The notes beneath the pieces were generated by a model, which made no database searches, was not told the DNA's origin, and was given only the letters and a program-made list of their open reading frames with translations. A stretch of 62,615 bases of DNA, counting the filler, from Choristocarpus tenellus KU-1152 (Eukaryota; Protista; Phaeophyceae): NCBI GenBank assembly GCA_964200185.2. It is 10 parts of 10 records of this genome, joined end to end, with 100 filler letters (N's around TTAATTAATTAA, not from the genome) between each part and the next. Parts side by side here need not be neighbours in the genome. Positions count along the whole stretch, not along the records: positions 35,713 to 39,286 come from CAXNAD020019169.1; 9 more parts are not named here. The stretch is one strand, 5' to 3'. Made by a program: the position numbers and the translations under genes. This document shows positions 35,613-39,414 of the stretch, one piece after another. How positions within the stretch are numbered: the first letter of the stretch is position 1; every line of letters starts with the position of its first letter.

Positions 35613-35720
35613 NNNNNNNNNNNNNNNNNNNNNNNNNNNNNNNNNNNNNNNNNNNNTTAATTAATTAANNNNNNNNNNNNNNNNNNNNNNNNNNNNNNNN
35701 NNNNNNNNNNNNGCACGTAC

Positions 35721-38700
35721 CCATCATCCAACATGCCCAACCATAGCACGTCCCAGGCAGCATCTAGTCTCAGGGTGGTCTCTTCTTCCCCCCCTGATCC
35801 CAATATATACAGTTCAACCCATCGGGAAACAAAATCTCCACTCAGGACAGCATCATCTGCGTTGCAAAGGTCATTAATAATATACGTACATTTTCATTGT
35901 TTTCGGGTTAATATGGGGCACAGTGTCTCATCAATGTGACCTACTTTAGTAGCTGTCTCCTGTGCTTATAGATCACAGTTGCACATTGGGAAAGGTGAAA
36001 CCTCACTGCCTTTCCCTTGCTCACCAATTGCCTCTCTTGTATGAATGTTACACAGGTTTGGTACAACAAAGGGACTATTTTCAATAAACTCTCTCGTGGG
36101 AGTACGACAAAATGTGTTCTTTCAAGAGGACCTCCTTTCCAAAACAGTAATAGATTGCACTAGAACATCTTTTCTTCATCGTCTCATTCAATCATATGTT
36201 TGACTAAATCCCCCCCAACTTATTTTGCCCATCTCTCGACACTGAATTATGTTTGACTTTTTTATTCTTTGTTCTTGAACTTTCTCAGCTGAAGCTTGAC
36301 TCAACTCCTTCATACATCAGTTATTCACCAAAGACCCATAGCATCTCAGGGGGGGGGGAAAGGTGTTCAGGCCAGGCTGTTCAATAGGGGCTCGATAGGG
36401 CGTTGTAAAATACTCCAGTTTGATACCTATTTTGCGGGTGGTTTCCTTCAGAATTGGTTCAGGCAAGGGGACGGAAATTGAAGGTGAGTTCAGATGAAGG
36501 AAAATATGACAGTTACCTCTACAACTCTCGAGGAAATTGTGGCCGTACCATAGTGCTATAACGCTGCATATATATATATATACACACACACTGCACTTCA
36601 TGGCAGCCAAAACAAAAAAATACTTTCTATGCCAGATTTTTCTTTTGATTTAGAGTCAAGGCTTTCCACACATTCTTCACCACCACTCTTCGAACAATGG
36701 TTACCATCCTACTCTACAAGAATCCTCTTCTTTTTCCTTTTGCTACGAGAATAAGCATACAGGAGTTACAAACGTTCTTTGGTCATGACCAACAAAAACG
36801 GGTAAGACAAACCCGATCGATTCTATTCCATCTCCGTCGTGGATGATCAATAAGCACTAGGGAATAGGGAGGCTGAAGTCAGAAAGACACACACATATAT
36901 ATAGTAGGTGTGCCAACCTAGAGGCTCTACAAGGCTCTCCTTTGCTCTACCTCTTCTTCTTCTTGTCCCACCTTCCTGAGGAAGGAATGAGTCAATGCTA
37001 CTTGCCTTCTAGAACCAGGAAGGTATCATGTAAGGCCAGGGACATATCTTGGGCAATAGATTCCCAAACTCGGACGTGGCTCATGGCAACGCCAATGACA
37101 CTCCTGGCATGGGACAAGCATGTGTGCACACAAGGAGTGTGTCAAAGAGTGTTGTCTTTCGTTGTTGTTGGGGTCAAAGGCGTTAAATCAACCTCGGCGG
37201 TAACAACATTATGCACTCACTGAATCCTTGTCATCTTTTACTTGAGTATGTATATACTTCAAAGTATCGAACATATGTTCCCCCACATCCTATATCTGCT
37301 GGGAAGACATTAATTTTTTCCGCGTCCTAGGACCTGTGGTATCACGTGGCCATGGTGTTTCGAAAATACGCCTCGTCAAAAACTGGTAAACAAGAGAAAG
37401 GGGATGCGGCTTTGAGAGGAGGCTGAACGGAATGAAAGGAGGGGTGGGGAAAGAAAGCGCAGGGCAATCGGGTGTTGAATATCTAGCAGTATTTAAGAGG
37501 AGCTGATGCCTCACCTGGTGTAGGCATGATTCTGGAAAGGATTAAGTGATCTCCCATATGTCCAGCTGGAAAGGTTAAAGAGTCTCTGGATCCAGGGCTG
37601 CGACATATCTAATGTTCGACCATCAGTGGCCTCCATGAACGACAGCTCATCCTCAGGGATTCCCTTCCAATTCAAGAAAAAAGACAAGGTTTCCATGTAT
37701 GTCTCATCAACGGTGTATATGGATGACATAGCATGGGTCAGAGGAAGAGCAAGAGGTCCTGCAAAGGACAAGCAAGGCTCCACTTACCAACTTAGCCATC
37801 TGTGCCAGCATTGACTCCTTACGATCCACCCGGCGCTCAAGATTGATGACAATAGTTTCTTTGATGCCCAAGATCGATGACGATTTTTTCCTCTCTGCCC
37901 CCAACTCCCTTACCCCACCAACCGTGCTCACCCTTTCCCCCGGGCCTCCATCCTCCACCTTGTGATATAATTTAACACGAGCAGTCGAATGCCTTCCCTC
38001 AATTGTCTTGCTGAGTTCTCCATCTCTCTCTGTGTTGAGCTCTCTTTGTGATAGGATATCTGTTGCTGCCTGTCTAACTTCCTTGCTCCCATCCCGATCT
38101 CCTCTTGTCATGGTGCTTGCTTCCGGCAAATCTCCAAACAGTATCTTACCTTCCTTGCCAGCCAATGCCCCCCCCCCTCCCCCTGTGACCTCTGACTTTG
38201 CTGTGGAAGCAAAGGCAGCGGCACCATCACTGGAAAAATGAACGGGAGGTTTCATGACCTGCACCACAATTCCATCCCCCAACAACTTTCCATTATCCTC
38301 CCTCCTCAAGGTTCCAGATCTGTCTGAACAGGCTAGGGAAATAAGAGACGCCAAGGTTGGCGGTGATGGGACGATGAGTAGCCCTGTTGAGGACAACACC
38401 TCTTCCGCACCAAATTTGTTGGGGAGGTCTGCTTGGTGTCTGCTAGACAGGAAGTAAGATTTCTGCTCGTGCGAGAAGGGGTGTATATGGGAGGATGGGA
38501 GTACATGAGTGAACGTGTCTTAGAGGGTACAAGTTTTTCCCTTTTTGTCCATTTGGGGCTTGGCTTCCCACTTTTTTTTTAATGACATTTTCCTGCTCCG
38601 AAATGTTTCGGAGTAGGTAAAATGTATACGTTATAAAAAGGTGTATCCAGAACAAGGATATTGACATCTCCTAACAAACATGAAAGCCAAAATTGCATCA

Positions 38701-39022
38701 AAATTGCAACATTGGACTTTGGCGCCCAAATGGACGCGGCTCTACCCTCTCAGATACTTTGACTTACATCCTCCTCGTTTGACACGCTGATTCTCTTTCC
38801 ATCTAGTGGTATTTCACCTACTCCCTCCTCACTTTGCCGCTCACTAGTCCTTCCTGCATGAAATCGTTCATCTGCTGAGATCAACTCGTTCCTTGTCCAC
38901 ACAGTGACAGTGCCCCCAGGAGGAAGGTGTTTCATCGCTAGCCTTTGATACCAAGTTGAGTTGAAGATCATGGGATAATAGTTGGATGGGGATGGGGGAG
39001 GGCATCGCAGTGGTTGGCAGTA
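35721..39022 (-). CDS. Glycosyltransferase family 25 domain protein (procollagen galactosyltransferase/LgtB-like); partial
   Basis: Exons ~39022-37788 (interrupted by MITE copy 6), 37663-37515, 37103-37006 and ~35856-35721. They give VINLERRVDRKESM..|GIPEDELSFMEATDG..|SVIGVAMSHVRVWESI...FLVLE|DDAVL...WDVLWLG, the canonical GT25 motifs in order. Confidence 0.85.
38507..38765 (-). mobile_element. MITE copy 6, inside a GT25 coding exon
   Basis: Perfect TSD ACAT/ACAT; removing the element and one TSD restores a continuous reading frame. Confidence 0.93.
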
Positions 39023-39414
39023 CTGGGTCCGAGTTCACATGCCTTCCACATACACAAATTGCATCTTCAGTACTAACAAAGGTATTGTTAGTCTGAAGTT
39101 TCCACACGTTGAACACCCATCACAACAATGAGCCATCTGAGTGATACCGTCTATGAGGGGGATGCCATTGAGCTCTAAGGACTCCTATGACTACCTTGTG
39201 GTAAACGTATTTTGAGCACCACTATGGAGGGCACTTTTGGCCAGCAACTTGCTCACAAGCAAATATCATCTTCTAGTCACACCCACNNNNNNNNNNNNNN
39301 NNNNNNNNNNNNNNNNNNNNNNNNNNNNNNTTAATTAATTAANNNNNNNNNNNNNNNNNNNNNNNNNNNNNNNNNNNNNNNNNNNNCCGCCACCCCCTCC
39401 CAGATACTTTCAGC

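Follow-up and report, generated by a model that had tools for sequence, protein, structure and literature searches.

Does a short transposable element that lies within a glycosyltransferase-like gene of the brown alga Choristocarpus tenellus KU-1152 interrupt a coding exon, and if it does, how would it be kept out of the mRNA? The locus is part of record CAXNAD020019169.1 (GenBank assembly GCA_964200185.2), which supplies positions 35,713 to 39,286 of the window, i.e., the whole 62,615-nucleotide stretch of DNA that was analyzed, filler included. All coordinates below are those of the window. Birth from a transposon is a known way for introns to arise, and the present case is a plausible example of it.

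The host gene

The gene is read on the minus strand, and the parts recognized are listed here in transcript order.

38768..38937, minus strand: probable upstream coding exon; the frame is open from 39034, and a possible GC-AG intron (39042-38938) precedes the exon
37788..38462, minus strand: long exon comprising a low-complexity linker and then the start of a GT25-like domain (PF01755 positions 3-25, E 0.049; Atlas lead)
37515..37663, minus strand: GT25-like exon, following a 124-nt GT-AG intron
37006..37103, minus strand: GT25-like exon (SH...W motif, LVLE); the intron after it is GC-AG and 1149 nt long
35721..35856, minus strand: GT25-like exon that completes the EDD motif and carries WDVLWLG; next donor at 35720

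The downstream exons are joined in consistent phases by introns of 124 nt (GT-AG), 411 nt (GT-AG), and 1149 nt (GC-AG), and their motifs occur in the same order as in family-25 glycosyltransferases, namely, INLERR, SH...W, LEDD, and WDVLWLG. These motifs and phases bear out the description of the downstream GT25 exons as intact in an earlier note on this DNA. Searched exon by exon, PF01755 was matched over model positions 3-25 with 13.9 bits against a gathering cut-off of 24, and an Atlas search provided one lead toward a GT25-like protein; the libraries gave no other support.

The host gene retains about 430 intact codons and four intact splice phases. If the gene had been dead since the insertion, the chance of finding no stop, frameshift, or splice lesion would be 0.06 at 2% decay and 0.003 at 4%. 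Because the GT25-like part is intact despite 2 to 4% decay of the element, this part of the gene is, judging from its sequence, most likely functional, which means that the element would have to be absent from the coding mRNA.

The intron at 35857-37005 is clearly of the GC-AG type, and 38938-39042 may be another within this gene; the organism may commonly use GC donors. Inside the intron at 35857-37005 lies another repeat (36390-36550), diverged and of lower copy number than the element, with a summed depth of 130 to 540 versus 17. It overlaps a 97-codon ORF that has neither a Pfam match nor a TIR and TSD. Depth also rises slightly at 39073-39192 (65 versus 11), which suggests a short piece of a repeat upstream of the studied part of the gene.

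An abundant MITE with a 4-bp TSD

The element and its parts are as follows.

38507..38765, no strand assigned: MITE copy of a very high-copy family, located by TIR/TSD scan and contig alignment
38741..38765, minus strand: TIR on the transcript 5' side; the terminal base is A here and G in the family (loose-end consensus; contig 8 begins at 38735)
38507..38531, plus strand: TIR on the transcript 3' side; positions 38514 and 38517 deviate from the family TIR
38725..38735, minus strand: subterminal 11-bp inverted repeat, with its partner at 38547-38557
38766..38769, minus strand: TSD ATGT, first copy, the source of the GT of candidate donor A
38503..38506, minus strand: TSD ATGT, second copy

This 259-bp non-autonomous TIR element (MITE), which occupies 38507-38765 and is read from 38765 to 38507 on the minus strand, has a GC content of 40%, versus about 50% in its flanks. 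Its 25-bp TIRs match at 19 of 25 positions, and the minus-strand TSD, ATGT, is found at 38769-38766 and at 38506-38503. The piece holds one TIR and TSD pair of such quality, and 2 of 40 shuffles yield one. Further evidence comes from two publicly available contig sets of this organism (X1 and X2), in which loose ends leading into unrelated flanks form piles at 38507 (199 contigs in X1 and 120 in X2) and at 38764/38761 (318 plus 203 contigs, 521 in total, in X1 and 355 in X2). These piles fix the boundaries of the element and indicate at least hundreds of separate insertions. A chance inverted repeat was ruled out by the scan with its shuffles and by the piles.

ATGT flanks both ends as the loose-end piles independently fix them, the element is non-coding, with stops in all three sense frames, and hundreds of distinct flanks among the contigs attest to a dispersed, high-copy family. 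By every tested feature, the element is a MITE. The MITE with a 4-bp TSD reported previously is thereby confirmed; of the span given for it, 38462-38770, the element itself is real, but 44 nt are host sequence. Similarly, the GAGT termini ascribed to it hold for the family, whose terminus is G-A-G-T, but the terminal A at 38765 is a private change of the copy at this locus.

The empty site forms a perfect 8-bp hairpin (38767-38774 and 38490-38497) with a 6-nt loop over the target, which only 0.2% of shuffles have. This hairpin may reflect a preference for palindromic targets.

Family size and age of the copy

Contigs aligning on the element number 19,227 in X1 and 14,464 in X2. The summed depth there is about 69,000 times (X1) and 51,000 times (X2) the single-copy level, a figure that is not a true copy number. 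The family has at least hundreds of copies and probably tens of thousands. The consensus of the loose-end flanks is AT rich, with 35 to 43% agreement, which hints that family sites are mostly non-coding.

Most of the aligned family pieces are 90 to 95% or less than 90% alike, and at seven listed sites, 91 to 98% of the family differs from the locus copy. The family TIR is supplied by a nested copy in the contigs, from which the locus copy departs at 38514 and 38517, and the family terminal base at 38765 is G by the loose-end consensus, versus A at the locus. In all, about 10 of 259 positions depart from the family majority. These differences are consistent with a copy that has aged by some 2 to 4%, although some of them may be subfamily marks. 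The unique flanks of the locus show zero differences in X1 and X2, single contigs pass unbroken from unique flank into the element, and neither contig set shows any sign of an empty allele.

Copies arranged head to tail or nested also occur in the contigs, as do forms with internal deletions, and the terminus has at least two variants (GAGTC and GAGCC). In a third run from the same study, of another organism (X3, organism B), 1 diverged read of 12.8 million matches 38571-38640, which suggests either carry-over or an element distantly related to the family. The TIR patterns were absent from the metagenome and viral contigs searched, and Rfam gave no match.

Position of the insertion in the gene

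When the element and one ATGT are removed, a single open frame runs from 38971 to a stop at 37707; recomputation thus reproduced the stop-free join at the empty site reported earlier. The 68 codons contributed by the upstream side have 0 stops, the two remaining frames having 6 and 5; an open frame occurs in 2% of shuffles. With the possible GC-AG intron at 39042-38938, the exon would begin at 38937, in the phase required. On the downstream side, the coding nature of 38333-37788 is clear, but the 56 codons that directly follow the element, which are C rich and open in 18% of shuffles, are weak evidence of coding.

Word searches, exact look-up, Atlas, PDB, NCBIfam, and plasmids revealed no relatives of either protein flank, and the same protein searches found no ortholog. 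A search of 1.84 billion representatives returned two matches for the flanks, both due to repeat-inflated chance. A search of sequencing runs for the stretch yielded X1 and X2 and no RNA run.

Taken over all three ways of removing an exonic element considered below (routes A and B and precise removal), we consider that the insertion is probably exonic, as the earlier note had held. The open empty-site frame speaks for that claim, and older-intron models that are also in frame compete with it. By rough weighing, we infer that an exonic insertion is favored a few-fold over such models.

Two other kinds of intron were considered and discarded at this site. A preexisting 42-nt micro-intron, GTACTC...CAG, has a donor with neither G at -1 nor G at +5, and the native introns measure 124 to 1149 nt. 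A euglenid-type non-conventional intron was ruled out, as there is no CAG at +4 to +6.

A candidate donor made by the TSD

The candidate splice signals at and near the element are as follows (slashes mark exon-intron junctions).

38762..38767, minus strand: candidate donor A, GAT/GTAAGT, phase 0, 7/9 U1 matches
38752..38757, minus strand: candidate donor B, AAA/GTATCT, phase 1, 5/9, without G at -1 or +5
38519..38521, minus strand: TIR-internal TAG acceptor (resuming at 38518), in frame with donor B, a +14-nt frameshift with donor A, and predicted to be paired in the TIR stem
38505..38513, minus strand: putative branch-point-like TTCAC and CTCAT, 3' of the TIR acceptor and predicted to be mostly unpaired
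38463..38468, minus strand: tandem GAGCAG acceptors (resuming at 38465 or 38462), which are preceded by 50 nt without any AG and both keep the frame with donor A

Native donors in this gene carry G at -1 and +5 in four of four cases, and no donor of this pattern exists between 38937 and the element. Donor A, at 38767, is the strongest in the region, and its six intron bases are identical to those of intron 1; against it, the -1 G is missing and the site is predicted to be 0.77 paired. The interval from 38518 to 38467 is free of AG, and each of the two AGs that come next keeps the frame with donor A. Predicted pairing is 0.81 at the TIR acceptor and 0.19 at the branch-like motif (fold z, -4.4). 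The branch-like motifs lie 45 to 50 nt from the first AGs that follow them, and native introns carry similar ones at -42 to -55. Splicing from donor A to the host CAG reads without a stop, as had been claimed; the pyrimidine tract invoked before that CAG is present, but it is mostly C-rich host sequence rather than element. Route A is supported, at the level of sequence, as consistent with the gene's own splice signals, and we give about an even chance to the proposal that an exonic insertion was rescued by route A splicing and so became a new intron.

From the observed element, family, frames, signals, and intact exons, we infer the exonic position, the splicing, the choice of acceptor, and the role of the stem, and we propose the following course of events. 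An abundant non-autonomous DNA transposon with GAGT termini and a 4-bp TSD would have entered an ATGT in a coding exon of the GT25-like gene, within the low-complexity linker that precedes the catalytic domain. Together, the GT of the duplication and the first bases of the element would have made a consensus donor, GTGAGT, which today reads GTAAGT. The element's own out-of-frame TAG would be hidden by the TIR stem, and the branch-like motif at the 3' tip of the element would direct splicing to the first downstream AGs, the GAG and CAG at 38465/38462, both of which are in frame. The mRNA would lose the element along with 13 or 14 host codons, and the gene would stay in working order. The outcome would be an imprecise, one-off, transposon-born intron of 302 to 305 nt.

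Alternative explanations

The element might instead sit inside an older intron, running, for example, from the GC donor at 39042 or from weak GT donors at 38844/38832/38817 to 38332/38323, with the open frame arising by chance. Most genic copies of a MITE family with thousands of members are expected to lie in introns. Such models are in frame and stop free and give an intron of 447 or 222 to 249 nt without the element; 39042 is native-like (AAG/GCATGT), 38332 has the best pyrimidine tract (16/20), and 38502-38320 is 60% pyrimidine, as is intron 1. We nevertheless judge an older intron unlikely, if well worth keeping in view: the open frame that it requires has a chance of about 0.004 for 39042 (0.023 × 0.18), or of about 0.03 if one of the nearer donors is used, and the TSD would also have to carry GT on the sense strand (5% of sites), which creates a strong cryptic donor whose frame does not match 38332. 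Much less probable is a position in a 5' untranslated or other non-coding region, with the GT25-like protein beginning downstream or the upstream exons belonging elsewhere. The first in-frame ATG downstream of the element is at 38256, neither flank has a homolog by the protein searches, and 39034-38768 lacks codon-position bias, but the frames open on either side of the element share one register (2% and 4% of shuffles), which, together with the asymmetry of upstream stops between frames, argues against this reading.

Among accounts that accept an exonic insertion, route B would run from the donor at 38757 to the acceptor at 38518, both within the TIRs, and add 8 codons. Its frame is open and 24 nt are added without a stop, just as the earlier note had it, and Aureococcus introners that add 12 nt offer a precedent. 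Moreover, all three differences from the family TIR in the 20 retained bases (38765, 38517, and 38514) are synonymous third-position changes (P 0.01 to 0.02, or 0.03 to 0.07 if the C at TIR position 5, which is not silent, is also private). That test is post hoc, however, and its family reference was pieced together from a single printed end and the logic of contig breaks; nor would one expect selection to act strongly on a random insert of 8 residues. As an exit, route B stands on its open frame but falters as a splice model: its poor donor has neither the -1 G nor the +5 G found in four of four native donors, a perfect GTAAGT lies 10 nt upstream, and both sites fall within the predicted TIR stem. 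Nor is such an exit, described earlier as built into the family's TIRs, special to them, since 29% of random TIRs contain an in-frame GT/AG exit; in the flipped element, route B has stops in two of three phases. The silent changes at the TIR ends would raise route B without displacing route A, and we hold route B to be distinctly improbable. Precise removal, as a non-canonical GT...AT intron at 38767-38505, would restore the exact empty site and is the only GT-starting register to do so. TIR-bearing introns with non-canonical ends are known in Fritillaria, Amoebophrya, and euglenids (PMC11282704). Because all three complete introns of this gene end in AG and the locus gives no sign of a relaxed 3' site, this possibility seems slight indeed. 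Finally, the insertion might never have been rescued, leaving a null allele of a recently dead gene. Donor A with the nearest acceptor (38518) produces a frameshift, and the run search gave no RNA run for the stretch, but no lesion appeared in about 430 codons or in any splice phase while the copy aged, an objection that weakens if the differences are subfamily marks and the copy is young. We regard a null allele as very unlikely.

The family as a possible source of introns

The earlier note had proposed that any TSD ending in GT would yield a GTGAGT donor, but it left out that such a donor joined to the TIR acceptor leaves a +14-nt frameshift. The same is true of the locus copy, which has no precise GT-AG removal (donor A with the TIR AG gives +14); its frame-keeping exits are limited to route B (+24, weak donor) and donor A with a host acceptor (-39/-42). 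On paper, there are better exits: insertion at AGGT would yield a GT-AG intron that is removed precisely, and insertion at GT[AG]N would yield a donor with the element's first base as its +5 G and, with the TIR acceptor, +12 nt. These targets make up 0.5% (AGGT), 2% (GT[AG]N), and 5% (NNGT) of local coding positions, with AGGT and GT[AG]N together at about 2.5%.

It is doubtful, on present evidence, that the family acts as an unusually large, facultative generator of introns whose symmetrical GAGT ends would give target-dependent exits. The scheme of exits that it would entail is just as tentative: precise at AGGT, +12 nt at GT[AG]N, trimming of host codons at NNGT, and +24 nt by the TIR-internal sites. 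So, too, is the view that a mostly non-coding MITE with tens of thousands of copies would have seeded many introns in a lineage without close sequenced relatives.

Comparison with known systems

In maize Ds and dSpm alleles, exonic elements are spliced imprecisely, with one site at the element end and a cryptic site in the host exon, so that few codons are changed; these alleles are laboratory derived or recent. Route A, proposed here from sequence, would likewise combine a common non-autonomous element, a site at its end, and a cryptic host site. Unlike the maize alleles, the present copy looks fixed and aged.

Sola2-like elements have G-R-G termini. No transposase or autonomous partner was seen for the present element, and its link to Sola2 consists only of the 4-bp TSD and these termini. 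The 4-bp TSD is common to Sola2-like non-autonomous elements (PMC3627910) and to the element at this one locus.

The MITE-type introners of Polarella glacialis and Symbiodinium are precise introns in hundreds to thousands of genes, documented by annotation and RNA (bioRxiv 10.1101/2020.10.14.339549). They have in common with the present element a TIR structure, a 4-nt TSD, and a donor from the TSD or the TSD/element border (bioRxiv 10.1101/2020.10.14.339549). In their classes 13 and 14, both splice sites come from an AGGH TSD, and the ends of the present family would allow the same at AGGT. In contrast, the present element, known here from the DNA of one locus, has the TSD ATGT and no precise removal with AG. 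Introners of Aureococcus sp. have an 8-bp TSD, add 12 nt, and were verified against an empty ortholog (bioRxiv 10.1101/2022.06.06.494994 Fig. 2F). Route B would resemble them in having both splice sites inside the element and in leaving extra codons in the mRNA, but the present element differs in its 4-bp TSD, its +24 nt, and its weak candidate donor. By analogy, the element would resemble the imprecise end of the introner range and is at most a candidate introner.

Implications

Were the element merely intronic, the finding would be an ordinary one. Because the family is huge and its exits would be set by a 4-bp target, there is a sharp test: AGGT, GT[AG]N, and NNGT should be enriched in exonic copies and not in intergenic ones. 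If route A or route B is true, an ordinary MITE would here have given rise, imprecisely, to an intron that is now fixed, and the locus would represent the stage that lies between junk insertion and specialized introner.
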